Part shown: positions 14,812 through 64,000 of the stretch, piece by piece
Numbering within the stretch: position 1 is the stretch's first letter
How the letters are laid out: the number at the start of each line of letters is the position of its first letter
NCBI GenBank assembly: GCA_002104905.1
Contig: MCFE01000498.1
Span: forward strand, 2,258-66,257
Direction: 5' to 3'
From: Basidiobolus meristosporus CBS 931.73
Lineage: Eukaryota > Fungi > Basidiobolomycota
DNA: 64,000 nucleotides
The notes under the pieces: generated by a model
The model's input: only the letters and a program-made list of their open reading frames with translations
What the model was told of the DNA's origin: nothing
The model's database searches: none
Program-made: the position numbers and the translations under genes

Positions 14812-17800
14812 ATGAGTTGGGCAAAGAAAGACGAGGATGGAGGTACTGGTTCAGCCTTTCTGTCTTCCCTCGACCTCCCTTCCCCTGTGTGCCACTGTTA
14901 TTTACCTACTTCTATTGTGAACTTTAGGCGAGTCTGGCCTTTTGCATCACCTCGACAAAACCACAGTTCTCCAAGAGGCTCGAGTGTTCAACGAGACCCC
15001 CATCTCGCCCAAAAAGTGTCGCATCCTCTTGGCGAAAATCGCCTATTTGTTATATGTGGGAGAGTCGTTTGCCACCAACGAGGCCACCGACCTATTTTTC
15101 AGCATCACGAAGCTTTTCCAATCGAAAGATGTACCTTCCATTCAGCACCCTCACTTTTGCTTCTCACTAACCCTCCTTTGTGTAGACCGCCCTGCGTCAA
15201 ATCGTCTATTTGGTGATTAAAGAGCTTTCCACCATCGCTCAAGACGTCATCATGATCACGAGTAGCTTGACTAGGGACATGCAGCCCAACTCCGAAGCTA
15301 TCTACAGACCAAATGCTATCCGTGCGCTTTGCAAGATCGTGGATGTAGGCTTGTCTCCCTTTTTCCAGTGCCTTTGCTCGTTTTATTGATGTAGGTTTGC
15401 CTTCTCCACCAACAGGCCCATATGCTGCAAGGAGTCGAGCGCTTTCTAAAGGCAGCCATCGTAGACAAGACCACCTCTATTTCTTCTGCCGCATTGGTGT
15501 CCAGCTATCATATGCTCCCCATCGCCAAAGAAGTGGTGCGTCGTTGGGCTAATGAAGTTCAAGAAGCCATGAATTGCAAATCTAGTTTGGGATTCATGTC
15601 CTCGTCTTCATATAGCGGCAATGGCATCATGTCGCAATATCACGCCATGGGCCTCCTCTATCAAATTAGACAGCACGACCGTATGGCAGTGATCAAGCTC
15701 GTTCAATCCTTTGCTGGCTCAGGGAGAGGATTCTTGAGCTCCTCAAGCACACTTCGTAGCACCATGGCCCATTGTCTGTTGATTAGATACGCCTGCAAGG
15801 TGATGGAAGAAGATCCTAGGTTTGTAGACTCCTGATCCCATCTGCGATCCCGACGAGCGCTCGCTAAACAACAGGTTGACTTCTAGCACGCAGAGACAAC
15901 TCTTCGAGTTGCTCGAGGGATGGCTTCGCCACAAGAGTGACATGGTGAACTACGAAGCGGCCAAGGCGATTTGCAACATGCAGAATCTATCCGCCAAGGA
16001 GCTGTTCTCCGCTGTCTCTGGTAAGCACCATGTTGGTTTCTAGCGTAGGGCCACTTCTAATGCACCCATACCCAGTGCTGCAACATTTCCTCTCCTCCTC
16101 CAAATCAACCCTTCGCTTCGCCGCCATCCGCACATTGAACAGGCTGGCCATGACCAACCCCACGGCAGTGTCGGTGTGCAATATGGATATGGAGAACCTC
16201 ATCACCGATTCCAATCGTAGTGTGGCCACTTTCGCCATCACCACCTTGCTTAAGACCGGAAACGAGGCCAGCGTCGACAGACTCATGAAGCAGATCAGTG
16301 GGTTCATGTCGGAGATCTCCGACGAATTCAAGGTGATCGTCGTGGAGGCGATCAGGTCGTTGTGCCTGAAGTTCCCCGCCAAGCATGGCACCATGCTTGC
16401 GTTCTTAAGCGGCGTGTTGAGAGACGAGGGCGGCTACGAGTTCAAGAGGGCTGTGGTGGAGGCGATCTTCGATCTCATCAAGAACATCCCCGAGTCCAAG
16501 GAGATTTCGCTGTCCCACTTGTGTGAGTTCATCGAGGACTGTGAATTCACCAAGATCTCCGTTCGCATCCTCCACCTCCTTGGTGTGGAGGGCCCCAAGA
16601 CCCCGTCCCCCACCGTGTACATTCGTTACATCTACAATCGAATTATCCTCGAGAATGCCATCGTTCGCGCGGCCGCCGTGAGCGCCTTGGGTAAATTTGG
16701 AGTGAATGTCAGCGACGAGAATGTCAAGAAGAGCGTTCGTGTTCTCCTGACCAGATGTCTCGACGACGTCGACGACGAAGTTCGTGACCGTGCCACTTGG
16801 GCCCTCAAGGTGATGGGCGACGAGGTGACTGCCGAGAAATACGTCAAGGACGACTCTTCGTATGCCTTGGCCGCTTTGGAGAGAAGCCTTGTGGACTACT
16901 GTAGCACCCCGGAAAGAACCGAGACACCATTCGACATCTCGACCATTCCTCAGATCACCAGAAAGCAGGCAGAAGCCGAGCGTCACACCGTCAGCGCCAT
17001 CGATTACGCCAACCTCGGCACCGTGCCAAGCATGACCAGTGCAAGCTCACCTTCTGTGGCTCAAGCATCGCAGGCACCAAAGGCCGATCAACAATCGTTT
17101 GCTGCAGAGATGGCGAAGATCCCCGAGTTCGCCAGCTTCGGCCCTCTTTTCAAGAGCAGTATCAAGCCAGTGGAGCTCACTGAGAGCGAAACCGAGTACG
17201 TGGTTACCTGCACGAAGCACATGTTCGCCGAACACGTCGTGTTCCAATTCCACTGCCACAACACTCTCAACGACTCTCTTCTGGAGGATGTCTCGGTCAT
17301 CATGCAGACTGACGACGAGGGCTTGGAGGAAGTGGCTAACATCCCAGTGGAGCAGTTGGTCTACGACGTCCCCGGCTCCGTATTTGTGGCCTTCAAGAAG
17401 GAAGACCCCGAGGTGTTCCCAGTCGCCACTTTCTCCAACACGATGAAGTTCGTGGTGAAGGATTGCGACCCAACTACCGGAGAGCCTGATGAGCAAGGTT
17501 ACGAGGACGAATACCTGGTAAGCATAGGAGGATGTCGCACAAGCTTGTCGATGCTAACCTTTCTCACTTTTCACCGACTTAGTTGGAGGATGTGGAGCTC
17601 AGCATTGGCGATTACATTCTTCCCTCATACATCAGCGATTTCGGAAGGGTGTGGAATGATCTTGGTGAAGATGCCGAAGTGGTGGAGACATTTGCATTGA
17701 CCGCCCTGGACAGTCTCCAAGGTAAGCTCCTCCTGCTAGGCAAATGCGTTCCAGTAATCTCAACTGAATCTTGATTGAATTCTAGCTGCTGTGACCTCAA

Positions 17801-47924: not shown

Positions 47925-50605
47925 ATGTTTCTAAGGGAGCGAAGCAAAGTGCTGATCCTTACTGTCGCTATTGGACTATGCGGTGCATTGGTTCCATTGA
48001 CTCAAGCAGCCGACCAACGCCCAGAGCAGCCGCTATACGATCTTGTTAAGCGCTTGCTGCCTGCTCAATACCAAAGAGAGATCCAATTTATGCTGAAGGA
48101 GACCATCTCAACCAACTCCACCACCAACGTCCACGATGTGTATCGCATCACTACCTCTAGAAGCTCAAAGGTAGTGATTGAGGGAGTCTCTCTCTCCGCC
48201 TTGGGTGCTGGTCTCAACTACTATTTGAGAAACACTTGCCAGGTTGATATGTCCTGGTCTGGAGATCGCTTTAGCGAACTCCCAACCAATCCCCCATCCG
48301 CAAGCTCCAATGTCATCCAAGGATCTATTGTACCTTGGAGGTATTATATGAACGTGGTCACAGCTGGCTACTCCACAGTGTTTTGGGACTGGGAGCGCTG
48401 GGAGCGTGAAATCGGTAGAGTTAGCCTGATGCTGCCCGGCTCATCATGACGTTGCTAATCATCGGCTATGCTAGATTGGATGGTCTTGAACGGTATCAAT
48501 ATGCCGCTCGCCCTAACTGGCCAGGAGTATATTACCCGTCAGATGTACTTGAACCTCGGGCTGCCACTGGAAGAAGTAAGTAGCTATTTCGTTGGTGCGG
48601 CCTTTCAGCCATGGAACCGCATGGGCAACATTCAAGGATCATGGGGGTTCAAGAATGATACTGGCGTGAAGAATGCATTCATCGATAGCCAGTTCGAGCT
48701 TCAGAAAAAGTACCATTTCTGAGTACAGTTATCTTCTCATCATCCATTGCACGCCTACTCACTTGATTAATAGGATCCTTCAGCGGATGAAGGCCTTTGG
48801 GATGACTCCCATCCTCCCGTCGTTCCAGAGCTTTGTTCCCTCTGCGTTGGTCCAAAGATTTCCCAACACCACGTTCCATGAAGCCACTCAGTGGTCCGGT
48901 ATGCCCCTCGAATACACCAAGGTTCACTATGTAGATCCTCAAGAGCCACTATTTGCTACACTGGCGGAGGAATTCATCAAGCTTCAGAAGCAGTTCTATG
49001 GCGAAAATGTTACTGACCATTACATTCTGGATCTTTACAATGAGTTGTTACCAGCCTCTTCAGATGAGCAGTACTTGAAATCCACCACCAAGGCCGTTGT
49101 GCACGCACTCAGAAAGGCCGACAAGAACGCCGTTTGGGTGATGCAGAGTTGGTTCTTGACCTCCACTCAGTTCTGGACTCCGGGTGTAACCAAGTCGTTC
49201 TTTGATGGGATCCGGGAGGCTGAGGGCAAGGCGTTTATCATCGATCTTTATTCTGAGGGATTGCCACAGTGGAAGCATACAGATGGTTTCTACGGCATGG
49301 ATTGGGGATGGAGCATGTAAGTTATCGGTCGATGGGTGATTTCGGCAGTTGATGGGTGATTTCGGCAGTTGATGGGTGATTTCGGATCACTAATGAAAGT
49401 CTCCTAGGATCAACAATTTTGCTGGCGGACAAGGGATCTTCGGGGTTCTTCCCACTGTGTTGGCTGAGCCATTTGCTGGGTACCATCATTCCGCAAAGAG
49501 CATGAGGGGAATGGGGGTCACACCCGACGGGATCAACACCAATGAATTCCTGTACCACCTAGTGTATGATATCGCTTGGAAGGATCCTAATCAGCCTTTG
49601 AGCGGTAAACCATTGCTTGACCAGTTCATCCAGCGGCGCTACGGTCCCAAACAAACTACCCCGTTGATGTTGGAGGCCTGGGACCAGATCTCCAAGTCTT
49701 TGTGGAACATCACCGGAGAGCTGACCGGTAAAGTTAAATCATATCTGGACCTCAACCCGAAGTTAGATATGGTGGCCTATGGATTTGAGCCTACCGTACC
49801 CATGTACGATACGGCTGTTGTGGCTGACGCCTGGAAGAAACTGATGCGATCAACCAACGGCCAAGAGGGAGGAGGCGCTCATACCGTTGTTCAGCAGGGG
49901 CTGGATGAACTTGCTCAAGAGGCCTCGTCGCTAGAGCTGACTCTAGGGTCGAAGGCCAATAACGCATCACCCGGGCTCCGCTTCGACATAATTGACGTGA
50001 CTCGAGAGGTTTTGTTAAATACGGTACTGCCAGCATTGCAAAAGGAATTGGTCAAAGGATTTAACCAGACTGATGTGCCTCGGATCACCCTCTATGGCGG
50101 TCTGATTGAAGCTTTGATACTAGATACCGACAGGTTGCTCTCAACGCACACTCAGTTCCACCTTGGTAAATGGTTGGGCTACGCAAAGGCCACGGCCAAA
50201 AACATGAAGGTGACTACCGGTGAGCAATCCATCACTCCAGCAAGTTACTTGGAATTCCAGGCACGTAACCAAATCACCTGGTGGGGTCCAGCTTCTCAGG
50301 GTGCCTTGGCCGACTATGCTTCCAAACACTGGGCTGGACTTGTCAAGACATACTATCTTCCTAGATGGCAGCATTTCTCAAAGTCCTTGCTACAGGCTGC
50401 TCGTAACGGCAAGGCCTGGGACCAAGATAGGTTCAATGCGGAGGTCGCTGCATTAGAGAGCAAATGGCAGTATGGTACATGGGGGCAAAACAAAGGGGAG
50501 ACATGGGGACCTTCTCCGCAGGATGATACGGTTGCAGTAGCGCAGGGAATTTTCCGTAGATGGGGTAAATTGGCCATCAAAATATCCCAAAACAAATCTG
50601 CCTAA
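47925..50605 (+). CDS. Alpha-N-acetylglucosaminidase (GH89, NAGLU-like), secreted
   Basis: [88 protein letters not shown]; three introns. Confidence 0.92.
49331..49384. repeat. 20-bp tandem repeat (~3 copies) inside a GH89 intron
   Basis: gatgggtgatttcggcagtt repeated. Confidence 0.85.
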
Positions 50606-51240
50606 AGTATTTCGTCAATAAAACCAGGAATACTCCATTATTAGTCAAATAAAGTAGGGTAAACGAGTATTCTACTTTGATGGTTTCTTCTACTACTAAT
50701 GACACACGCAAACCGAATGTGTACCGGAAACTATCATGTAGTTATCAATGCTGCCAATCTAATCAATCTTTATTGCCGCATTTCTTGGACTACGCTGAGA
50801 TTATCCCAACCATTGATTTCCCCATCCCGGGGGAAGTAGACCAGATCCTTCGGAAGCTCCCTTACTTTGGGTACAATACGTTTTGACACTAGAGGTACGC
50901 ACAACAAGGATGTTAAGTACAGCAGATGCCTTAGTCAATCGGAAGATATTTGCCTTGAGCCTATTTAGTTACTAATTATTAACCATAGAAAAGTGGCCTG
51001 CTTGATGGTAAAGCAGCAAGAATATTTTATTGCTGATATTTGGATACTTAAAAGGATCTTGATTGGAGCCTGGGTAATAGAGTGGGAACCTTAGCTGAGG
51101 GGTATTATTATAACTATTCAGCTCACACCCAAACCACTCTTACTAAAGCTTCCATTTAGCTTATTGCCAAACTCTGGCTTATTTACTTATCAGCTAGCTC
51201 TTAGAACTAGTGGAGGCCTGGTTTTATGTCCAAGATAAAA

Positions 51241-52060
51241 TTAAGGGGCTGAAAGTTACCAAGTGGTGAAATCTTTACTTACTCATGACAAGTATCTAAA
51301 GAAACCAAGCTAATATGAAGTGATCTCCAATAGGCTAGGTCTGACAGATATCTTCCTGCTATACCAGGTCTGAGTGTTAAGAAGCTGAGTGTTACTGTAT
51401 TTCCTAGTTAGCTAGGTCTGGGGGAGGTGTCCTGAGAAGTTAGAATCTCAGTGTATATGTGGTGAGTTGTACTGATTTGCAGTAGCTGAAATGTGACCCA
51501 AATAGCCAGCAGACTGGGGAACTGAGAGGAATATCTTGACATCACTGGTCAAGTTAAGTAGGCAAATATGTTGAAGTAGCATTTGAGAATCTCAGAGCTC
51601 AGGGGGTAGCAAGAGTGGTAAGAATGATTTGTCAACTGTATCATAGAGGGGAACATTCTGGAGGGATACTCATCATAAAGGGCATGTGTTGCATAAGGTG
51701 CAGCTTCCATAGGTCTGTCAAGTACATCATGTAAGTGAATTTAGGCTTTTCTAACTGCAGTATATACTTTGCACACTTCTTGACATCAGGATTTCTAAGT
51801 ATGATACTCTAGAAGGAATCAGATGCAGTGAGATGGGGTCTTCTTCAAGCAATGTTCAGTCAATTTTTGCAGTTGTAGAGTATGGAGTATAATGTAGTTG
51901 TAGGGTAGAGAAGTCTGAACTTGCATGACATAAACCAAAAAGCACCAAGTATAGCATATCAGTAGGGGTATTCAAATAGATTGAGGACCAAAGAGTTAAT
52001 GCACCAGATTGCAAACTTGTTATGTTTAGTGCAGTTTCCAGTGGTAGGCCCTAAGAAATA
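51241..52060 (-). mobile_element. Decayed telomeric non-LTR element (family A-like), 3' portion
   Basis: 51600-52050 aligns with 61000-61450 of the long element; begins with a degenerate 3' module ttaagggg...gttaccaagtggtgaaatctttact; multiple stops. Confidence 0.75.
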
Positions 52061-52224
52061 ATATTGTGAAGATCCTGTCAAAAGGCTGTTACAGAATATA
52101 AGTCCAATGAATAAGTGATACTAATACCACTAGGACACCACACAAAAACTGCTGGAAAAAATAGCACCTCAGATTTCACAAAATACTTGGTCAAAATTTT
52201 TGATCACAATGATCCCATAGTTGC

Positions 52225-52278
52225 TTAGGGGGTGGGAAAGTCACCAAGCTAGTGAAATCTTTATTTGAGTTAAGAACT
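52225..52278 (-). mobile_element. 3'-terminal stub of telomeric element family B, interrupted by Copia
   Basis: TTAGGG + ggtgggaaagtcaccaagctagtgaaatctttatttgagttaagaact matches 53312-53362. Confidence 0.8.
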
Positions 52279-52887
52279 TGTTGTAAAAATTTGCAATTCC
52301 ACCTAAATACTCACCTAACTTAGTCACTTAGATCATTACCCTCAAATCCTAGAGAATACTGACCAAATTCCTTGTTGGGATTTACTTGGAATATTTTCAC
52401 CAAAATACCAGGTACCCAGAACATGAAAATTCTCAAAGTTGGCCAAATAGCCACAAGCTTTGCACACATGTTCTTGAGACCTTCCTCAATCTTTTCTATG
52501 TGTTTGTAATGCCAAGACCAGGTAAAAGTATAAATACTACTTTTACATTCAATAAATCATTAAGTGAAAAACACATAATCTACTTGTCCACCCAATCACT
52601 TCCAATATCTCCAAGACTCTTACAACAGGTTATGAGCCCCAAGCTGTCACTCTCTGCAATGTCTAATATTGCTATTACTGGAATTTTCCCCTCTGCTGAA
52701 AAGTTGGATGGATCTAACTACCAAGTGTGGAAGTTGAAGATGAAGATGCTGCTACAAGAAAGAGGCATTTGGGATATTGTCATGGGAGAAGAATGCCCTC
52801 CTAAAAACATGGGAGAGAAAGCCTTAAAGTACCAGAAGAAAGAACAAAGTGCCTTTAACTGCATTTGCCTTAATGTTAAGGACAATT
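52279..52887 (+). mobile_element. Truncated Ty1/Copia (half-tRNA-primed type): 5' LTR 52279-52627, PBS 52628-52639, gag fragment from 52659
   Basis: LTR TGTTGTAA...TTACAACA; PBS GGTTATGAGCCC is complementary to the anticodon arm of initiator tRNA-Met, as in Ty5/copia; gag N-terminus EKLDGSNYQVWKLKMKMLLQERGIWDIV; cut off by TTAGGGTTAGGG at 52888. Confidence 0.9.
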
Positions 52888-53234
52888 TTAGGGTTAGGGG
52901 GGATGATAATGACCACAGGGTGAAATCTTTATTTAAATTGTAAATAAAGAAGCCAAGTTTCAATATGAATATCTGAGATGCAGTTAGCCTATATGATAAA
53001 CCTGGACTTTGCTGTATCCCAAATATCCTCAATATCAAAGTTTAGAAGAGAATGTAGCAAAACTGCTTGTTCACTGTAGTATTTCTTGAGGAAGTTTGCA
53101 ACTTGAAGGGAAGGAGAGTTTTTCAACAAGCTGGTAAACCTTTTGAGGAGTTCTTTTTCCAGAGAGAATGGTACAAAGAGTGGAATGTCTAAATGATGTC
53201 TGAATATATGCTCTGAGAGCTCCCAATCCAGCAC
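52888..53234 (-). mobile_element. Telomeric element family C: ORF1-like C-terminus directly followed by the shared 3' module (no RT)
   Basis: ORF 52989..53234 is open to the junction and similar to the ORF1 C-terminus at 63672-63857; ~90-nt 3' UTR with AATAAA, hairpin and CCCTAACCCTAA. Confidence 0.7.
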
Positions 53235-53310
53235 TTAGGGGGGAGACAGTCACCAACAGGTGAAATCTTTATTTCAGTTGAAACAAAGAAGCCAGTGCTA
53301 CTGTTGTAGC
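53235..53310 (-). mobile_element. ~75-bp 3' stub of family A
   Basis: TTAGGG + gagacagtcaccaacaggtgaaatctttatttcagttgaaacaaagaagccagtgctactgttgtagc, near-identical to 60841-60915. Confidence 0.9.
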
Positions 53311-53311
53311 A

Positions 53312-55320
53312 TTAGGGGAGGGAAAGTCACCAAGTGGGTGAAATCTTTATTTGGGTTAAGAACTAATTCAAGTACAAATAAAGAAGCCAATTAAGAGGTC
53401 TAGAACCTCTCTAATAAGTAATCTAATTTATGTTTTGTTTCATCTCTAATGTTTGTTTCAATAAAGTAAAGCTCATCAGGGGTAAATATAAAATTCAGGG
53501 GTTTTGGGGGAAGTACAAATTGTAGATGTTTCTGATCGATATAATCCAAGACTGGAACCCAGCCTGGGATTAGGTGTAGTAGGAAAGGTGTGTGGACTTG
53601 TAAGTAGCTCTGCCACGTAGATCTTAGATGGTCCTGAGCCAGTAGTCTTGGATTCTCAGCTTTTTGAAGTTTTGAAGCAAGCTCTGTTACTACAGCAGAG
53701 CCAACCAGGGTGTGCCAGCAAGAAGATTTCAGGGAGGAGTTAGATTGAAGCCATTGTTTGATGGAGGGGTTATGTGATATCTGAAGCTTGACTAGGAAGG
53801 AAGCACAGAGATAGATCATTTGGATTTGGTATGGGTAGAACCCAAAGGCTCCATTAGTTGCATGGATATAGGGAGATACTGGAAGATAAGGTACCAGGGA
53901 TCTGATACACTGATGGAGAAATTTATCCAGGCGGTGAAGCTCTCTGGAGGTTAGGAGTATAATGTGGAGACCAAATTCAAGTACCGGCAGTACATACTGC
54001 TTCAGAAGTATAGGGAACTTTTGAATTGGAGTGTCTGGAGGGACTACTACCAGAAGCTTTTTGAGAGCCTGTTGGGCAAGACTGATCCAATTATTCAGGT
54101 GGAGCTTTGAGTCAATCCCATGTTGACAAAACGGCAGACCTAGATATATTGCAGTTTGTTGTGGCAGAATGCTAGTGTGCTGTATAGTTGTAGTGCACCT
54201 AATTGGGACTGTCTTGGAAATTGAGAGTGAGAGGTTGCTGGCAGCCAAGTACTTCTCAATGATGGCAGTGTCTGCTATGGGATTAGGAGTAGCAATCTTG
54301 ATATCATCCGCATACAGAGTTAGTAGTGGATAGGGAGAGTCTGGTGAGGGGCCTTTTGGAAATAAAGGAAAGTCATGTAGCAATATCACAAATAGTAAGG
54401 GACCTAGTACAGATCCTTGGACTACTCCATTTAGAACCTCATAAGTCTCTGATGTACAGCTTGGATGCAAAATTTTGGCTGAGTTCTAACAAAATAGAGA
54501 ACGTACAAGAAGGGTCATTGGTAGTGTGGTAACTGCTAATAGCTTTCTCCAAAGCAGAGCTCTGTCCACAGAGTCAAAGGCTTTAGTAATGTCAAACAGA
54601 ATGGTTGGCAATGAGAATTGAAGTGAATGATCATGGCTTAGCACTACAGCCATATCCAAGGAGAGTTTGGGCAAGAAGCCAAACTGAGAAGGATGGAATG
54701 GATATAGTTGAGATTGCAAGGATCTTGCTATTCTAAGCTCAAAGATTTTCCAGCAGGTTGGTAGGAGTGAAACTGGCCAGTAAGAACCTGGGAGTGAGTG
54801 TTTCCCCTTCCCTTTGTATAAGGGTATTACATTTGCCTGTGACCAGGCCTTTGGGGTAGTCAATTGTTGGGCACAGATAGAGTAGAATGGGAGAAGTAAG
54901 TGACTCATTTTGGAGTAGCACACCCAGAGTAGATTGTAGGTAATCAAGTCATGTCCAGGTGCAGTATTTGCAGGAAGCTTCTTTAAAATTTTCTCCAGAA
55001 GCTTTGCTGAAACCAAAACTGGAGATGTTGGACTGCTGGATATGTTACCAGTATGGTAGAAAGGAGGAGTGGGATGCACGGATGAATCAAAGAATATAGG
55101 GGCCAGTTTGTCTGGTGATGGTATACTCCTTGCTTGGGGTCTCATGGCTTTGTATACTCTTGATATGGACCTTGTGGTGGCATTCATATTGACTAAGGGC
55201 AAGGTATCCATGATATGAGCCCATAATCTAGTATGCTCAGTGATCTGTAGTGACTTGGAGTAGGAGATTGCGCTTTCCAGGAGGTTCTGTGTTTTTGGGT
55301 TAGGGAAACATAGGTAGCTG
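53312..55320 (-). mobile_element. Telomeric non-LTR element family B, 5'-truncated; RT with one in-frame TAG (54486-54488)
   Basis: ORFs 54486..55397 and 53400..54470 are in the same frame: APGHDLI, QFGF, DITKAFDSV, GVVQGSVLGPLLF, YADD. Clearly homologous to, but diverged from, family A. Confidence 0.9.
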
Positions 55321-55322
55321 GA

Positions 55323-55502
55323 ATAGGGTGTAGGTGTTATAGTAAGGGCTAGGAAAAGGTTAGAAGAGCAGGGGGTTTGGGGGATGCAATCCCCCACACT
55401 GCTCCCATACTCTTTAAATTCCCGTTGGATTACTTTTCTCTCATTCTTGGTTCTGGTCCCTTAGGGTTAGAATTCCTCCTTCTAACACTTATCACCCTAA
55501 CC
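55323..55502. repeat. Degenerate interstitial telomere-like motifs
   Basis: tagggtgtaggtg...taagggctagg...ggttag right after B homology ends; TTAGGGTTAG at 55461-55470 facing CCCTAACC at 55495-55502. Confidence 0.4.
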
Positions 55503-55912
55503 ATAAATATTTTTACCCCACAATTGGCACATTGTTTGCTCATATAGTGGGCATGTCTGGGCCAATATTTGTCTCCCTATACTGTCCATATGCTCTGTAT
55601 AAGTCTTGATGACTATTTAATTAATAAATTGTTATTTTTAATGTATATCTAATAATCAATGGGATTCATCCCAATCTGACCACAATCCCATATTTTGATA
55701 AGCTTTGGGCACCATAAATTGTGCGGCCCTAATATGATAAAAAAATTCATGGCCAATACAAATTTTGTGTAACCCAATTGCTTTTACCAAATATAAAGTG
55801 TATCCCAAAGTTCAATATATATTATGGCTATAATAGAAACTTTATTTGACACCATTGCAACTACTACTTATATTCTATGTGCACATGTATCCTGTGGGAA
55901 TTGTAAAACTTA

Positions 55913-56623
55913 GCCACGTGGTACAAAAGTGCTTTTATTTTTCATCATGATAGTTTGACATGAGTTCCTAACGCACTTTGAAAGTACGCAGTAGCCATAC
56001 CCCAACAGGTTTTAAGGATGTCCACTAGCTACGTCTACTTGTGTCTAGCAGGAGCCATCAATCATCAGCCGCGCAATACTGAAATGCTTTTATTTTTCAT
56101 CATGCTAGTTTTGTATGAATCCCTAACGCACTTTCATAGTGCGCAGTAACCATACCCCAACAGGTTTTAAGGATACCCACTTGCTACGTTTACTTGTGTC
56201 TAGCGGGAGTTATCAATCATCAGCCACGTGGTAATAAAGTGCTTTTATTTTCATCATGCTAGTTTTGTATGAATCCCTAACGCACTTTCATAGTGCGCGG
56301 TAACCATACCCCAACAGGTTTTAAGGATACCCACTTGCTACGTTTACTTGTGTCTAGCAGGAGTTATCAATCATCAGCTGCGCGGTAATAAAGTGCTTTT
56401 ATTTTTCATCATGATAGTTTTACATGAGTCCTTAATGCACTTTCATAGTGCGCAGTAACCATACCCCAACAGGTTTTAAGGATACCCACTTGCTACATTT
56501 ACTTGTGTCTAGCGGGAATCATCAATCATCAGCCGTGCGGTAATAAAGTGCTTTTATTTTTCATCATGATAGTTTTACATGAGTCCCTAACGCACTTTTA
56601 TAGTGCGTGGTAACCATACCCCC
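55913..56623. repeat. ~155-bp subtelomeric tandem repeat, ~4.6 copies
   Basis: gcttttattt marker at 55931, 56086, 56241, 56395 and 56550. Confidence 0.92.
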
Positions 56624-57063
56624 AGAAAGTAGTGTGGATGCTTACTTTAAACCCTCACTTGTGTATTGTACGGACTATCAACAAACAGCCGTGTGGGAAT
56701 GGAACATCATAGAAAAGCATTGCTTTGTTGTTAGCAAGTATTGATGCGCAAATAGTGGTACTATGTGAATTATTGAGTAACTATTTACTCTAGTTGGTTC
56801 CAAGATATTCCTAGACAATATGCTCAAAATCAATATTAGCATCAATAGCTTGCTCTTTGATCACTAAACCACCGCACCCAATATGCGGTGGCCTTGGTTT
56901 TGTCTAGCCGTTGAGGAATGAAACCAGAGTACAGTCACAAGAGAGGCACAAGTGAAATGTGATGAAGTAAGTGTATATGAAAGTAATATAAATCTACAGG
57001 ACAGAAGAGAACAACTAGTAGTTAAACAGCACTCACTGACACTCCACCAAGTAGAGCACCAAC

Positions 57064-57543
57064 ATGGACAATAAACAAGTCATGAGGGGAAAGCTTAAGG
57101 ACCGCTACTTGGGGATCAAGACCAAAAGAGGAAGCTGCCTCTACCATAGCAGTCCTCACGCTCCAAAGGAAGACCAAGAGTCTATTATAGACAAAGATTG
57201 CGGCAAGAAGAGCAGTACAATTACCAGTTCTGGTAGTGGTACCTTTGGAAGTCCCAAATACCTGGAGAAAACTCGGAAAAAATTGGCAGATGACTCAGTT
57301 GTCCTGAGGAGAAAACAAGCCAATGCGATTGAGCAGTTCCAAAACAAAGTTCAGCTTAGTTCTTCTTTGCCTCACTACAAAGTACTCCAAGTGGCTTATT
57401 TGGATTATAAGCGTATGAAGGAGAATCAGGCAGAGACTGATAAGTTAAGTGATAGTAAATTGCATCACTTCTTAGATCAGGTCGAGAAACAGTTGCACAG
57501 CCAAGAGATGGAACAAGAATTGACAATTACAGAAACCAAATAA
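57064..57543 (+). CDS. Hypothetical 159-aa ORF in the subtelomeric block
   Basis: ATG-initiated, charged and helical-looking; no recognised domain. Confidence 0.3.
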   Translation: MDNKQVMRGKLKDRYLGIKTKRGSCLYHSSPHAPKEDQESIIDKDCGKKSSTITSSGSGTFGSPKYLEKTRKKLADDSVVLRRKQANAIEQFQNKVQLSSSLPHYKVLQVAYLDYKRMKENQAETDKLSDSKLHHFLDQVEKQLHSQEMEQELTITETK

Positions 57544-58752
57544 TTTTGCCAATGTAGTTTTGCATTTTAATAAAATAAAAGGGTGCTGATAAGAACAGAA
57601 TAAAGTAAACTTATGTGTACATCAAATGATTCAAATACTGGCTAGATGGATGTTACATAGAAGCAAGAAGCTCAGTAACCTCAAAGGAAAGATATGATGA
57701 ATGGGCCACCAACATCATCCAAATGAGTATAAAAGTGGAGAAAGGAGACATAATCCTTCATAAAAAACAAGAAGCATGGAAGCAGGCAGTAGCCGGGTAG
57801 ATGCCAGGAGTGAAGGTAGAGTACAAAGAGAGCAAGGAAGGGGACAAGGACGCGGAAGAGGACGCGGAACCGGGTGCGGAAGAGGAAGAGGGCAAGGAAG
57901 TGGCCAAATCCAAGAGGAGCGTGAAGGAGGTGTTGCAGCAAACGTGGATGATGCTGAGCAAGCTGCTGTAGTCACTACCAGGCGGCCGGTCAACCAAGTT
58001 TCCCAAGCATTGTCAGAGGTTTGACAAGAGCTTCTGGAATATAGGACAACATTGCACCATGAGATATTGCGACGTATGTGCCAGGAGATTAAACAAAGGA
58101 GGGGTGATATTGTAAAGCTAAATTGGGATATTGCTGGACTTCAAGCCCAGATTGATTTCAGTTTCCACCATTCTACTGAGGCATTAGTGGCATAAATGGT
58201 AAAAACGTTTGCCCGCATCAGGGCAAGCAATAAGCAGGGTGCATCTTCCAACCCAGGTGTACTTGCAAGCGACAGTATTGGAGGGGATACTACTTCCTCC
58301 CTCAAACCTACCACAAGCCAAGAGACAAGAGCAGAATCCTCCACAACAATGAGAATGGCCCCCACGCAGGTTGATATGGAAGTGTGCAAAGAAGACGTGG
58401 AGAAGCAGAGTGGGGATACTATAGGCCAACCAGAAACTGTAATGGAGGCGGAGAGACCAAGTCATATTGTCATCTTAAAAATACCACAGGTTGATTCATT
58501 GCTATCACTTCCCCCATCATCACTATCTGTGCCCCCATCACCACCGCCATCCTCTGGCTAACTTGAGTAAATAAAGAATTTCCACCATCCCAAATCAATG
58601 AATTGACAAGTAATAAGTTGAACTGATAAGATTGACGATTTACAGACTTATATATGTGAAGTATGTAGTACTTAAGAGCTTTCAAGTTGTGGTGTATTAT
58701 CAAGTATTCACCGTCACATAAATCACGCAGCAGTTGTTGTATCCCTATCCCA

Positions 58753-60584
58753 ATGGCATTAGAAGCCAGCAGTTACAAGGAGCATTGGAAAAATTTTGGC
58801 GTTTACCTGGCAACAGTGGCAGGTGTAACAAAACGCAGCTATTGCTCAATGACCATTACCCCATCTATGAGATACTTGCTATTATATGGAGGGTATTCTG
58901 TTGAGCACTTTCAAGACAGCAAAATATCCCCACCTTATGATGAGCGTATAGCTGAAGAAACATCCAGCTGTGGAATACTCTATGAGCCCAGTTCAAAGGT
59001 TCAAATGATTCACCTTGCAGATCTACATGGTGATGAAGACATCACAGTGACAGTTCTCCCAACTCCAGACAACATATCAACTACAGAGGCAGCCAAAGGG
59101 GTGATTTTAATTGGCAACAGCTGTGCTAGTGACCACAAGAATCTCTACATATATGGTGGTTTTGAGCTGAGCCGTAGAGAATACTCAGGGCAACATGGAA
59201 GTGCCAAAAAATGGGGGAAAAAAGCAATACAAAGCAAGAGTGGGGAGACAATCAATAGAAGACTGAGCAAGCTGGAGGTAATCACGTACAAAGATGGCAA
59301 TGGATGCTCCAGAGTATTGGAGACAAGGCCATTCTTGAATAATCCGGCAAATATGCCTTCAGCAAGAGGTTGGGCAGTTCTTACGTATGCATTTGATTGT
59401 TTATTCTTGCTGGGCGGCTATCCTACACCATTGGAACCACCTTATACCCAACCAAATGGGAGTTTTTTAAACAAGTTCTACTGTTTAAAATTGCAAACTG
59501 GTGATTGGCAAAGATGATATGTACACTCAGCAATACAGGAGCTTGGAGAAAACTTTATTGCTGTGGTAAACAAGTATGGCAACAAAATCCAATACATCAA
59601 CAATGCAAATGTTACATTCACCTATGATGTCAATAATCAGATCTAGATTTACCCTCCCAATCCAAGTCCGGAAGAAATGAGTACAAAGCAGCTACTAGGG
59701 CGCCTTCTTAATGAATTGGCAGCAATCTCTCAGCGGCACAAGAGGGAAGGCGAAGGAAGTGCTGAGACTGCAAATATCTTGCGGCATAGTGCCCATGGTC
59801 TTACTGTCCCACTTAAGAACCATCAAGCATTTGGCATACAATGGCTGATGTATACAGAGGCCATCCATAAAGGAGCATTGCTTGCCAATTCCATGGGACT
59901 TGGAAAGACATTGCAGATATTAAGTCTCATATTGGAGACACCTGAGCAAAGGCCAAATCTTATTGTTGTCACGCTTGGAATACTTCTCAATTGGGTGATG
60001 GAGATAAAGACAAAAACAAGGATATCCAATGAAGAGCTTCACGTATTTCATGGAAAATTCCAAGCTATCAAGTAGTCAGATATGGAGACTAAGAGGATCG
60101 TGCTCACCACCTACCACACACTATGTGTTGAAGCAAGGAACCCTGATTTGCCTATATGGAATGTGAAATTTGGCCAAATAGTGGCCAATGAGGCAGATAC
60201 ACTTAAGAACTACAAAGGTGGTAGCTTAAATGCAGTGAGTAAAATTGATGGAGAATCCTTGATACTTGTCACTGCCACCCCATTCCAAAATGAGATTATG
60301 GATCTTTATTCATATTTCACATTATTCAATCTATGGGAAGGCATTCCAAAGGATTTCCATTGACTCCTACTTGAGGAGGCCAATGCAAACGGGCTAGTTG
60401 AATGGGTTGTAGAAAGACTTGGCCCATTAATATTGAGACGCATTCCAGAGTCGCAAATACTTGGAGAACGCGCAGTATCCATGCCTAGTATTCAAGAGCA
60501 GATTGTCTTGTGCCAATTCTTGCCGGAGGAGCTGCAGGAGTACAAACAACTGCAGTCAAGTCTTCCAGAGGAAGTCGGTTGGAT
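58753..60584 (+). pseudogene. Intronless kelch-repeat + SNF2-family ATPase gene, decayed and 3'-truncated
   Basis: One reading frame broken by stops at 59515, 59644, 60073 and 60361. Kelch-like LLLYGG, LYIYGG, PSARGWAVLTYAFDCLFLLGG; SNF2 motifs HQAFGIQWL, LANSMGLGKT, IVLTTY, VANEAD, TATPFQNEIMDLYS, LGPLILRR. Cut by GGGTTAGGG at 60585. Confidence 0.85.
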
Positions 60585-60840
60585 GGGTTAGGGGGAGACA
60601 GTCACCAAAAGGTGAAATCTTTATTTCAGTTGAAACAAAGAAGCCAGCGCTACTGTTGTAGCTTTGATACAAGAGTGTGTAGCTGAGGGGAATTTGTAGG
60701 TAAGTTAATAAGAAGTGATGATAGTTCTTCAGTGCTCAAGACACTGTTCAGTGGGAAGGGGTAGCAAGAGAGGTAAGAATGACTTGTGAACAACATTAAT
60801 GAGGGAATGTGATAAGGATTGATATTCATCATAAAGGGAG
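60585..60840 (-). mobile_element. ~250-bp 3' stub of family A
   Basis: Near-duplicate of 60841-61095 beginning GGGTTAGGG. Its C-terminal frame (...SSLLINLPTNSPQLHTLVSKLQQ*) matches family B's C-terminal length better than the long copy does. Confidence 0.9.
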
Positions 60841-63800
60841 TAGGGGGAGACAGTCACCAACAGGTGAAATCTTTATTTCAGTTGAAACAAAGAAGCCAGC
60901 GCTACTGTTGTAGCTTTGATACCAGAGTGTGTAGCTGAGGGAATTTGTAGGTAAGTTAATAAGAGTGATGATAGTTCTTCAGTGCTCAAGACACTGTTCA
61001 GTGGGAAGGGGGGTAGCAAGAGAGGTAAGAATGACTTGTGAACAACATTAATGAGGGGAATGTGATAAGGATTAATATTCATCACAAAGGGAGTGTGCTG
61101 CTGCAGATATTGCTGCCAAAGGTCTGTCAAGTACTTCAGGTAGGCCAGCTTGGGTTTTTCTGACTGCAGAATAAATTCAGCAAACTTCTTGACTTCAGGA
61201 TCTCCAAGTATAGTTCTCCAGCAGGAGCCAGGTGTTGTGTGGTGTGTTCTCTTCCAGGCCTTAATCAGTGGGTTGTTGCAGTTGTGAAGTCTGAGGTATA
61301 ATCTGGTTCTAAGGTAGAGAAGTCTGATCTTATAGGGCATAAACCCAAAAGCACCAAGAATAGCATGTCTGTAGGGGCATTCAGGCAAATGAGGCACCAA
61401 GGAGGTAATGCACCATACTGCAAACTTGTCAAGCTTAGTGCAGTCTCTAGAAGTAAGAGAGAGAAGTGGTAAGCCAAATTCCAGGACAGGGAAGACAAAC
61501 TGCTTGAGTAGAAGGAGGCAGCTGGGAGCTGAAGTTGTAGGAGGAGTAACAGCCAGTAGCTTGTGGAGTGCCTGTCTTGCCAGGAGAATTCTCTTCTTCA
61601 GGTGTGATCCAGAGTCTAGTCCAGTAGGAAGGAAAGGAAAGCCAAGATATGTAGCAGAAACCTGAGCAGGTAGAGTGGAGTTCTCCAAGTTGATGGGAGA
61701 GCCCAAAGGTACTGTCTTTGCAATGGAAAGCTGGAGATTATTCTTCTGCAGATACTGGTGGATGGTCTGGGAGTCTTGTTGCACATTGGAGGAGGATATT
61801 CTGATGTCATCAGCAAAGAGAGTAACCAGGCAGTCAGCTGAGAGTCTTGGGAAATCATTCATGAAGATGGCAAACAGTATAGGACCAAGCACAGAGCCTT
61901 GAACCACTCCATTAGGAACTGAGAACACAGCTGATTGCTCACTTGGGTGCAGAATTCTTGCTTGTGGATCCAGAAACAGAGACCTGACAAGGAGAGTGAG
62001 AGAGGTACTGGAGAAGCATTGCAACTTGGACCAAAGCAGATTTCTGTCAACTGAATCAAAGGCCTTAGTAATATCAAACAGAACAGAGGGATACTTGCAC
62101 TGGAGAGAGTGATCTTGGCTAAGTATGACTGCATATTCCAAGGAGAGGCCAGGAACAAAGCCAAACTGTGCAGGATGAAACTTGAGGGAGTCAGAGTAGA
62201 GCTCCTGAGCTAGCAGAAGCTCAAACACCTTTCTGCAGGTGGGCAGCAGAGATATTGGCCTGTAGGAGCTAGGATCCAGGTGCTTTCCTTTACCCTTGTA
62301 CAGTGGCAGAACATTTGCAAAGGACCATTCCTCAGGAGTAGAAAGCTGGGCTGAGCATTGCTGAAACAGTAGAAGCAGAAGTGCAGACATGGCCTTGGTA
62401 CTAGTCTTCAGAAGCTCATAGGAGATTGTGTCCACACCTGGGGCAGTAGAGTTGGGAAGCCTCTTGAGCACATTATGGATTCTCCTTTGATCAAGTGCAA
62501 GTGGGATGGGCAGAGTCTTGAAGTCAGGATGAAAGCCAGGAGTTGAGTACTGCTTTGTAGAGAAGAAGATGTTAGCCAGCTGTTCTGTTGAAGGTAACTT
62601 CCTGGAAGAGGGCCTCATTGCCCTGTAGAGTCTTGATACTGTTCTTGTTATAGAGTTGGAAGATTGCAGAGGCAAAGAACTCATAATATGATCCCAGAGC
62701 TGAGTATGCAGAGTGTGGTGAATTGCCTTGGAGTGGTGTATGGCTGTCAGAAGGAGTTTCTCTGTTTTTGGGTTAGGGAAACTCAGGTAGCTTTGTTGCA
62801 GGGCTGAAACAATGGATTCCCATTTTTTTGAGGTAACAGCAGTAGTCTTGCATGGCAGTGAGAGGGAGGCAGACACCAGAATCAGATGCTTCACAAAGAG
62901 CCAGGCAAAGTTGAGATCATCTGGCAGAGAAAGTAGCAAACTGGCAAGCTTCAAGTAGTTCCCAAAGTCTTTCTTCTGATTCTTGGTAGCTTTGTGGGTG
63001 AGCACAGTAAGTTTTGGCAGCTTCTTCTTCACAACTGGTTGCATAGAAAGGGACCAGGCTGGGTGGTCAGAGGCTCTCAAGGATCCTAGCTCAGCTCCAG
63101 AGAATTGCTTAACTTCATTCACAAAGTAGAGGGCAGCAGCAGAAGGGCAGATCCAGTCAACACATCTTTTCTCAGATTGAGCACCTAGTGCTAGCAGGTG
63201 GCTTTCTCTCAGGAAGTTCAGTAGGAATGTAGACCTTGGCTTCATTCTTGCAGTCAGAGTAGTCTTGTTCTCAGGATGGGGAATGTTGAGATCTCCAAGC
63301 AAGATAACAGGTGTTGATATAGATTGTTGGTATTGCTGAACCTTCTGGCATATAATTTGCACTTCCTGAAGGGCTAGACTTGGAGGCAGATAGCAGAGCA
63401 CCAGACTGATAGTTGGCAACTGGAGAGCAGCACAGTCAGGGGAGTAAAGAGGAACACAGAGCTGAGGAGTATTGATGGTAGAAGAGATGAAGCAGATAGA
63501 GGAGGTATTCTTTGTTCTAGGAGTAGAAAAGCAATATAGATTAGTCAAAAGTATAGAGGGTAGCTGGACATCAATCAAACACAGGAGGGAAAATCTTGAA
63601 AGAAGTCTCTCTAGAGTTGGTCTTGATGGCTGTATGCTGTTGCAGTTAAGCAACAGAACTTCAGGTAGTCAGGCAGAGGTTGTAGCTTCTTCAGAGGCAG
63701 CATTAACAATGTGACCTGCAGAGTCCCAGAGCTCTTCAAATGGTGCATCACTTAAGTCAGCAAGGAGGGAAATGGCATGGTTCTTGAGGAAGTATGCCAC

Positions 63801-63857
63801 ATCATAGGAGGGGGCTTGTCTCTTGATGGCAGCAAAGAAAGACAGAATGGCAACATG
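60841..63857 (-). mobile_element. Long telomeric non-LTR retrotransposon (family A): ORF1 C-terminus + ORF2 (APE endonuclease-RT), 5' end capped by the telomere
   Basis: 926-aa ORF 60873..63653. APE motifs NCNS, LCYLPPS, LLGDLNIPH, VDWI, SDH; RT motifs APGVDTI, YRPISLLPTCRKVFE, QFGF, DITKAFDSV, QGSVLGPILF, FADD. A probable 1-nt deletion near 60960 alters the extreme C-terminus. Confidence 0.95.
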
Positions 63858-64000
63858 GGTTAGGGTTAGGGTTAGGGTTAGGGTTAGGGTTAGGGTTAGG
63901 GTTAGGGTTAGGGTTAGGGTAGGTTAGGGTTAGGGTTAGGGTTAGGGTTAGGGTTAGGGTTAGGGTTAGGGTTAGGGTTAGGGTTAGGGTTAGGTTAGGG
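63857..64000 (+). repeat. Telomere (TTAGGG)n, G-strand on +; right chromosome end
   Basis: About 23 TTAGGG units running to the end of the window, with two short variant units (TAGG, TTAGG). Confidence 0.98.

Follow-up and report, generated by a model that had tools for sequence, protein, structure and literature searches.

Retroelements dwelling at telomeres have arisen several times, i.e., in the Jockey and R1 clades in insects, the CRE group in Dikarya, the Penelope-like elements (PLEs) in rotifers and basidiomycetes, and the Giardia elements, and the main evidence that retrotransposition and telomerase are akin comes from them. The fungal telomeric long interspersed nuclear elements (LINEs) known so far are all of the type with a restriction-like endonuclease (REL). 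In this study, a stretch of 64,000 nucleotides of Basidiobolus meristosporus CBS 931.73 (contig MCFE01000498.1; hereafter the window) was analyzed, in which the final 12.8 kb of a chromosome arm consist largely of one-way stacks of LINE copies with telomere-like 3' ends. These copies are predicted to be of the apurinic/apyrimidinic endonuclease (APE) type, and a carrier of this type has not so far been reported for such arrays in fungi; the system itself is one of the telomere-targeted non-LTR retrotransposons and not categorically new. Based on the results presented here, it is likely that several related APE-type LINE families are specialized for chromosome ends in this Basidiobolus-like fungus through G-strand-primed, tail-guided addition.

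The MoTeR1 and MoTeR2 elements of Magnaporthe oryzae form arrays of the same orientation with 5' truncations and invasions of long terminal repeat (LTR) elements, in which interstitial tracts of no more than two repeats are left through breakage of longer ones (PMC7367193). Cnl1 of Cryptococcus and FoTeR of Fusarium are further fungal telomeric LINEs with a REL-type endonuclease (PMC12810828, PMC12857005). The copies in the window resemble these fungal elements in that the 5' end is toward the chromosome end and the 3' terminus is formed by a telomere repeat, or part of one, and not by poly(A). Head-to-tail arrays with truncated copies, interstitial tracts ranging from AGGG to two repeats, LTR elements within the arrays, and relics internalized after breaks are also shared with the MoTeR-type elements (PMC7367193, PMC12857005, PMC12810828). 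However, MoTeR, Cnl1, and FoTeR belong to the CRE/R2 group, carry a C-terminal REL and a single open reading frame (ORF), and occur in Dikarya, whereas the elements studied here have a predicted N-terminal APE fold and an ORF1, and no REL or CCHC motif.

Outside fungi, TRAS1 and SART1 of Bombyx mori (R1 clade) are likewise APE-type LINEs aimed at telomere repeats, and the orientation of TRAS1 relative to the G strand is the same as in the window. However, they end in poly(A) and lie inside long TTAGG arrays, and the specificity of their endonuclease (EN) has been demonstrated, while the copies here have no poly(A) and at most 2.5 flanking repeats. Similarly, HeT-A, TART, and TAHRE of Drosophila (Jockey clade) form head-to-tail arrays with the 3' end inward and heal broken ends, and TART and TAHRE encode both APE and reverse transcriptase (RT), but they have poly(A) tails and a host without telomerase, in contrast to the TTAGGG cap found here. 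For the Athena and Coprina elements, Gladyshev and Arkhipova in 2007 reportedly described an RNA 3' end complementary to the G strand, 5'-truncated copies, and short telomere stretches between them, and proposed priming by the G overhang. These elements differ in having a PLE/telomerase-like RT and no endonuclease, as opposed to the LINE-type RT and constrained APE domain here. In the eel element UnaL2, a conserved 3' stem-loop and a short terminal repeat thought to pair with the target are said to be needed for initiation (work of Kajikawa and Okada in 2002); this stringent-type LINE differs in that its terminal repeat is unrelated to the telomere and its copies are dispersed. Elements of the Tx1 and L1 groups carry an APE-type endonuclease, and Zepp of Chlorella is poly(A)-tailed. 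Zepp and Tx1-1_ACar of the Anolis lizard (Tx1 group) are entered as telomere-associated in a listing within PMC10088271, but their hosts are a green alga and an animal, respectively. The EN-deficient Athena and Coprina PLEs are mentioned as telomere-associated and situated at chromosome termini in 10.1101/2021.04.23.441226.

A preliminary description of the locus had pointed to the insect, Magnaporthe, and Penelope-like precedents, but Cnl1, FoTeR, and Tx1-1_ACar were missing from it. Its statement that no fungal APE-type LINE of such behavior had been described agrees with the literature searched, in which, with Repbase not covered, neither an APE-type fungal LINE with a telomere tail nor a telomere study of Basidiobolus was found. 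Two traits so far observed separately, a LINE of predicted APE type and a telomere-complementary 3' end without poly(A), are joined here in an early-diverging fungus that retains canonical telomeres, and in several co-existing families with one common 3' module. This raises the question of whether a telomere-like RNA tail alone suffices to send a LINE RT to chromosome ends, and whether the nuclease would then still be needed.

Telomere-like 3' ends of the elements

Seven LINE copies (E1 to E7, numbered outward) were found, 65-3019 nt in length, 5'-truncated, without LTRs, and with a common 3' module. A 15-nt core, GTGAAATCTTTATTT, was matched with at most one mismatch at 51266, 52252, 52920, 53260, 53338, 60612, and 60864, always on the + strand, i.e., antisense to the element, and was absent at this threshold from the rest of the 64 kb; with up to three mismatches, 10 matches were observed in the 64 kb versus 2.6 expected. 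About 25 nt before every core is a telomere-like start, at the very positions where the preliminary description had placed the seven 3' ends. The + strand starts with TTAAGGGG at 51241 (E1), TTAGGGGG at 52225 (E2), TTAGGGTTAGGGGGG at 52888 (E3, the longest tail in the window), TTAGGGGGG at 53235 (E4), TTAGGGG at 53312 (E5), (GGG)TTAGGGGG at 60588 (E6), and only TAGGGGG at 60841 (E7). Read in the RNA sense, E1 ends in ...CCCCTTAA and is joined to unique DNA, E2 in ...CCCCCTAA joined to the body of E1, E3 in ...CCCCCCTAACCCTAAAA joined to a Copia gag, E4 in ...CCCCCCTAA joined to the body of E3, E5 in ...CCCCTAA joined to the body of E4, E6 in ...CCCCCTAACCC joined to a SNF2-related sequence, and E7 in ...CCCCCTA joined to the body of E6. 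The starts comprise 0.3-2 telomere units in these seven copies, and the earlier count of one or two TTAGGG or variants at each holds for six of them but not for 60841, where there is no complete TTAGGG. The copies had also been described as lacking poly(A), and indeed no A/T run is present at any of the seven element junctions.

Remnants of LINE coding sequence, searched by tblastn with the ORF1 and ORF2 proteins, were located at 51644-52057, 53394-55343, 60624-60853, and 60876-63857, all on the minus strand; the same search detected none in window positions 1-51000, which are DNA with ordinary genes. With the cores on + and the coding sequence on minus, the single polarity reported earlier, the 3' end being on the centromere side, applies to all seven copies. 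Neither a target-site duplication nor a target resuming distally was found at any junction in the window or in the comparison contigs. Missing duplications are expected if copies were added to ends, and such duplications are no strict requirement for membership among LINEs.

The comparison contigs (L001-L015) are 2-8 kb long and come from other sequencing runs or samples. At least three families of the window also occur in them, i.e., family A (E4, E6, and E7), family B (E2 and E5), and family C (E3). In ORF2 the families are only 41-67% identical to each other, but their 3' module is conserved. This module of 45 nt (60841-60885 on the minus strand in E7) is present in all seven copies and reads, in the RNA sense, AAAUAAAGAUU-UCACC-loop-GGUGA-spacer-C5UA(A)(CCC...), with a 5-bp hairpin of variable loop that was supported by RNAalifold on an alignment of 13 sequences, including one compensatory change from U-A to A-U. 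The RNA-sense end is C5UAA followed by 0-1.5 further CCCUAA units. A scan of metagenome DNA for the module gave 0 matches. As a separate observation, AAAUAAAGA of the module in families A and C (60841-60905) can pair with an upstream UCUUU(G/A)UUU, burying AAUAAA in a stem; this pairing was seen by eye in the alignment and was not recovered by RNAalifold.

Nine more junctions with similar tails were present in the contigs, making a total of 16 with those of the window. Their tails are TAA, TAACCCTAA, and TAACCC in L002, TAACCC in L003, TAACCCTAACC in L008, TAACCC and TAA in L009, TAACCC in L011, and TAACCCTA in L012. Over the 16 junctions the tails range through TA, TAA, TAACCC, TAACCCTAA, and TAACCCTAACC, and in six of them TA or TAA stands directly against non-telomeric sequence. 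The flank in the contigs is usually a 5'-truncated element of another family, and the same head-to-tail arrays are seen as in the window, some with full-length copies. For example, L011 and L008 each contain an element whose tail directly abuts the complete 5' end of the next one. These full-length 5' ends (L011 4437-4520; L008 4-80) begin with TCTTT(G/T)A... straight after the ...TAACCC of the distal element. A (CATC)3 run is located ~55-60 nt from the 5' end, and its cDNA strand, GGATGGATGGATG, is G/T-rich; it could be speculated that GGATGGATGGATG might help telomerase to seed repeats. The copy in L003 was considered as a possible counter-example, a full-length element in foreign flanks, and was ruled out, as L008 and L011 showed the flanks to be the 5' untranslated region of the elements themselves in a head-to-tail array.

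The antisense strand of every copy runs on into the telomeric G strand, and the tail is C-strand-like with a variable register; the polarity is as predicted by G-strand priming. Many LINEs end in short tandem repeats and not in poly(A), and an ordinary dispersed LINE with a short-repeat tail that resembles the telomere by chance could accumulate passively in a gene-poor subtelomere. Such an explanation is very improbable, however, given the one orientation of the copies (7/7), the agreement of the tail with the telomere unit of the host in varying register, the absence of target-site duplications and resumed targets, the zero copies in 51 kb of genic DNA, and the recurrence of the same arrays in contigs from other samples.

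Proteins encoded by the elements

The assignment to the APE-type LINEs in the preliminary description is supported by an ORF2 in which a predicted N-terminal APE fold is followed by the RT. ORF2 of E7 matched RVT_1 with an E value of 5.5e-26, and its best match among solved RTs was the human L1 ORF2p (E 1.4e-12), the R2 proteins being far weaker (E 0.05). The Pfam matches to APE remained below the curated cut-off (E 3e-4 for E7 and 3e-6 for the protein P0005), and a profile of the N-terminal 245 residues of ORF2 had no sequence match among solved APE structures. An AlphaFold (AF2) model of the domain, built from 17 sequences, had a predicted local distance difference test score (pLDDT) of 86 and a predicted template modeling score (pTM) of 0.80, and its fold matched TRAS1-EN, APE1, exonuclease III, and L1-EN with E values from 3e-11 to 8e-10. 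TRAS1-EN was the top match, only marginally ahead of APE1, so that the two are not distinguishable. No member of the family varies at the catalytic Asn, Tyr, Asp-x-Asn, Asp, and Asp-His of the putative nuclease. Between E7 and its counterpart in L009 (76% identity), the ratio of nonsynonymous to synonymous substitution rates was 0.12 for the APE region, compared with 0.07 for the RT; the former value indicates that the domain is maintained by selection. At the C-terminus of ORF2 no CCHC/zinc knuckle, RNase H, or REL motif was found.

The metal-binding Glu (Glu43 of L1-EN) is replaced by Asp in every member, in the motif L-I-D-V (63570-63572 in E7, residue 33 of ORF2 counted from the UGA). Given this replacement, the putative nuclease may be attenuated or altered.

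The family is isolated. An exhaustive HMMER search against 1.8 billion representatives returned ~5 clusters at 50% identity, with members of at least 49% identity. The next relative was an Artemia protein of 1996 aa (E 1e-112, six stretches at 31% identity), all others having E values of 1e-51 or weaker, and the nearest outgroups were APE+RT proteins of arthropods and of one Mucorales fungus. No sequence affinity to the EN chains of TRAS1 or R1Bm was detected for the family or for these outgroups.

ORF1 is whole only in the related contigs and comprises an N-terminal CxxC...CxC Zn-ribbon, a coiled coil, and a conserved C-terminal domain of 150 residues. It belonged to no Pfam family and had no significant match in the PDB by sequence. 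The AF2 model had a mean pLDDT of 55, reaching ~80 in the C-terminal domain; the Foldseek matches to RNA recognition motif (RRM) or ferredoxin-like folds were non-significant, and an L1-like RRM is not claimed for ORF1.

In 11/11 copies from at least seven divergent lineages, ORF1 and ORF2 share a reading frame, and only one TGA, with CTN after it, lies between them. The UGA is located at 63669-63671 in the window and at L001 2112-2114, L002 2669-2671, L007 905-907, L008 1666-1668, L009 1449-1451, and L011 1595-1597 and 6702-6704, and it is also found in L013, L014, and L015. The APE domain begins 5-6 codons past the UGA, and there is no conserved ATG. As UGA-CUN is a classic leaky context, readthrough of this stop codon probably yields ORF2 as part of an ORF1-ORF2 fusion. 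To our knowledge, readthrough between the ORFs is unusual for LINEs.

Possible modes of addition

In the mode of addition that we favor as the simplest one, a form of target-primed reverse transcription, the 3'-OH of the G strand would pair with the UAACCC tail of the RNA and prime first-strand cDNA, the RT would copy the RNA outward and the chromosome would be lengthened, and telomerase would then add repeats onto the new cDNA end. At junctions with only TA or TAA, the primer would most likely be a chromosome end without repeats, or a fresh cDNA end reached through a template jump, and an APE nick in duplex telomere repeats could be a second source of the 3'-OH. Where TA or TAA lies beside plain sequence (6/16 junctions), these bases can be argued to come from the RNA. 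The truncated gag and SNF2, together with a telomere relic, show the involvement of broken or eroded ends. For the junctions observed in this study, we regard free or broken ends as the likelier primer. The preliminary description had proposed that the RNA tail anneals to the 3' end of the G strand and that the RT extends the end; the anatomy fits this proposal, but a free end and an APE nick are not separated by it as primers. The elements do not replace telomerase, as perfect TTAGGG repeats cap the end.

Several points weigh against this favored mode. The constrained APE domain with intact catalytic residues suggests that the nuclease is used, and by analogy with the EN-minus PLEs an element relying on free ends only should have lost the domain. 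In Magnaporthe, interstitial tracts break when they comprise at least three repeats, and only those of two or fewer persist (PMC7367193), and short tracts are therefore no proof that telomeres were short at the time of insertion; the use of short junction tracts as proof of end-priming was dropped given these data. Moreover, the restriction to subtelomeres rests on one chromosome end and contigs of 2-8 kb, and the RNA 3' end is read from DNA, where an AAUAAA 30 nt upstream could mean that the transcripts are polyadenylated.

The conservation of the APE domain also bears on a strictly APE-dependent insertion into duplex telomere repeats, like that of TRAS1/SART1 or as proposed for MoTeR, in which a nick of the G strand within TTAGGG would pair with the RNA tail and ordinary target-primed reverse transcription would follow. 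We consider this a serious alternative, though not quite a probable one. The nicked sites would include the short tails of resident copies, the short tracts between elements being survivors. The fold and the catalytic residues are kept under purifying selection, as this alternative would predict, the orientation matches that of both TRAS1 and MoTeR, and MoTeR arrays look alike and retain only tracts of at most two repeats (PMC7367193). Head-to-tail arrays would also result if copies were inserted into resident tails, and so would the exact joins to full-length 5' ends in L011 and L008. On the other hand, the 6/16 junctions with TA or TAA only have no GGG from a target repeat, and the truncated gag and SNF2 would each need a de novo telomere first and then an insertion in its first repeat. 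The Asp in place of the catalytic Glu in every family member also speaks against a strict dependence on the nuclease, and so does the APE profile, which matches no solved APE by sequence and marks the domain as atypical.

A variant of end-priming in which the ORF2 protein extends a naked or critically short 3' end on its own RNA tail, without the nuclease, as a telomerase-like back-up, is entertained only tentatively and as rather doubtful. If true, an APE-type LINE healing ends in a telomerase-positive fungus would be an intermediate between ordinary LINEs and the Drosophila-type telomere.

History and composition of the terminal 12.8 kb

At 63857-64000 the window closes on the + strand with (TTAGGG) x ~24-24.5, which identifies a chromosome end with + as the G strand. 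Its history can be read as follows. Unique DNA stops at 51240, where E1, now decayed, and then E2 would have been added. A Copia-type element would have entered and later been broken in gag at 52887, after which E3, E4, and E5 would have been added. A telomere would then have capped E5 truncated at ~55460, leaving the TTAGGGTTAG relic and an inverted CCCTAACC, and would later have been internalized. The next step would be the arrival of a 5.1-kb block with a 155-bp satellite and Kelch/SNF2, which would have been broken in SNF2 at ~60587 before E6 and E7 were added and TTAGGG repeats capped the 5'-truncated E7. The decay falls outward, E1 being badly decayed, E5 having one stop, and ORF2 of E7 being open. 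The locus thereby offers a natural model of subtelomere turnover, in which a Copia element and SNF2 have been truncated, a telomere internalized, and a 5-kb block captured.

Two junctions had been said to cut unrelated sequences, and this is the case in the Copia gag at 52887 and in SNF2 at ~60587; no interrupted sequence resumes distally of the nested junctions in the window. Since TTAGGGTTAG is kept on the 5' end of E5, former chromosome ends are really recorded here. The stronger claim that each junction marks a former chromosome end is supported at this relic and at the two truncated genes, but template jumps or tandem duplication could have made some of the others, as in the E6/E7 pair with 96% identity.

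A build-up mainly at the DNA level, through break-induced replication with other chromosome ends as the source, unequal exchange or D-loop amplification, and end joining after few primary insertions, is unlikely to account for the stacks. Such events are documented for MoTeR arrays (PMC7367193), the 5.1-kb block between the stacks must have come by one, and over 252 bp E6 is in tandem with the start of E7 at 96% identity. However, the neighbors in 52888-55460 are of different families (C, A, and B) and therefore not duplicates of each other, the tail length is individual to each junction, and the mixed-family order is not repeated in other contigs. The 5.1-kb block is certainly a product of DNA-level events, and the E6/E7 pair may be another.

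In the proximal stack, E1 (51241-52224, minus strand, 984 nt) is the oldest and most proximal copy, 5'-truncated, with a degenerate tail and one mismatch in the core; only 138 aa of its ORF2 remnant are alignable, at 54% identity. It joins unique DNA ~600 bp beyond a NAGLU gene, the domains of which are at 48673-50605. E2 (52225-52289, minus strand, with an approximate distal boundary) belongs to family B and is reduced to a short 3' fragment, which abuts E1 on its truncated 5' side; E2 matches L002 484-530 at 91%, and the similarity between E2 and E5 stops after GTTAAGAACT. The Copia-type LTR-retrotransposon fragment (52290-52887, + strand) comprises an upstream region and the N-terminal part of gag, with DUF4219 (E 3e-10) and Retrotran_gag_2 at profile positions 1-51 of 172; no further Copia sequence was found distal of the cut at 52887. 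E3 (52888-53234, minus strand) is a family C 3' fragment of 347 nt with the tail TTAGGGTTAGGGGGG, and E4 (53235-53311, minus strand) is a family A 3' fragment of 77 nt that joins the truncated E3 and has 97% identity to the 3' end in L009.

E5 (53312-55460, minus strand) is a family B copy of 2.15 kb that retains ORF2 from ~residue 225 as far as the stop codon and is interrupted by a single in-frame stop. Its tblastn match to P0005 238-890 has 65% identity, homology is traceable to ~55458, and the ORFs at 53400-54470 and 54486-55397 are of one frame. The relic TTAGGGTTAG (55461-55470, + strand) lies directly on the 5'-truncated end of E5. An inverted TTCTAA...CCCTAACC follows 24 nt past TTAGGGTTAG(AA), with CCCTAACC at 55495-55502, and the whole of 55461-55502 looks like the remnant of an internalized telomere, possibly from a head-to-head fusion or from a capture event. 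The two LINE stacks are separated by a non-LINE block of 5.1 kb (55471-60587, without assigned strand), which was defined by ORF, domain, and repeat evidence and may stem, for instance, from another chromosome end. It contains 4.6 copies of the 155-bp satellite at 55912-56622, small ORFs, a Kelch-like ORF at 58687-59517, and a SNF2-related frame at 59677-60587 with in-frame stops that is cut at ~60587; no inverted repeats were found in the block.

In the distal stack, E6 (60588-60840, minus strand) is a family A 3' fragment of 253 nt joined to the truncated SNF2, and the GGG preceding it is of ambiguous origin. E6 and the first 252 nt of E7 (60589-61094) form a two-copy tandem of 96% identity, which could have arisen from two additions made separately, from a template jump, or by tandem duplication. 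E7 (60841-63859, minus strand), the terminal copy of family A, is 3.0 kb long and 5'-truncated inside ORF1. Its ORF2 is uninterrupted at 60873-63668, with APE and then RT, and beyond the UGA the last 62 codons of ORF1 are retained (63672-63857). The terminal telomere (63860-64000, + strand), (TTAGGG) x ~24, was added directly onto the 5'-truncated end of E7. An Rfam scan of 50000-64000 gave no match.

The fungal host assumed in the preliminary description was confirmed by a coatomer-gamma exon at 16030-17700, which has 90% identity to Basidiobolus ranarum and ~70% to proteins of Glomeromycotina and Mucoromycota and places the host among early-diverging fungi outside Dikarya.

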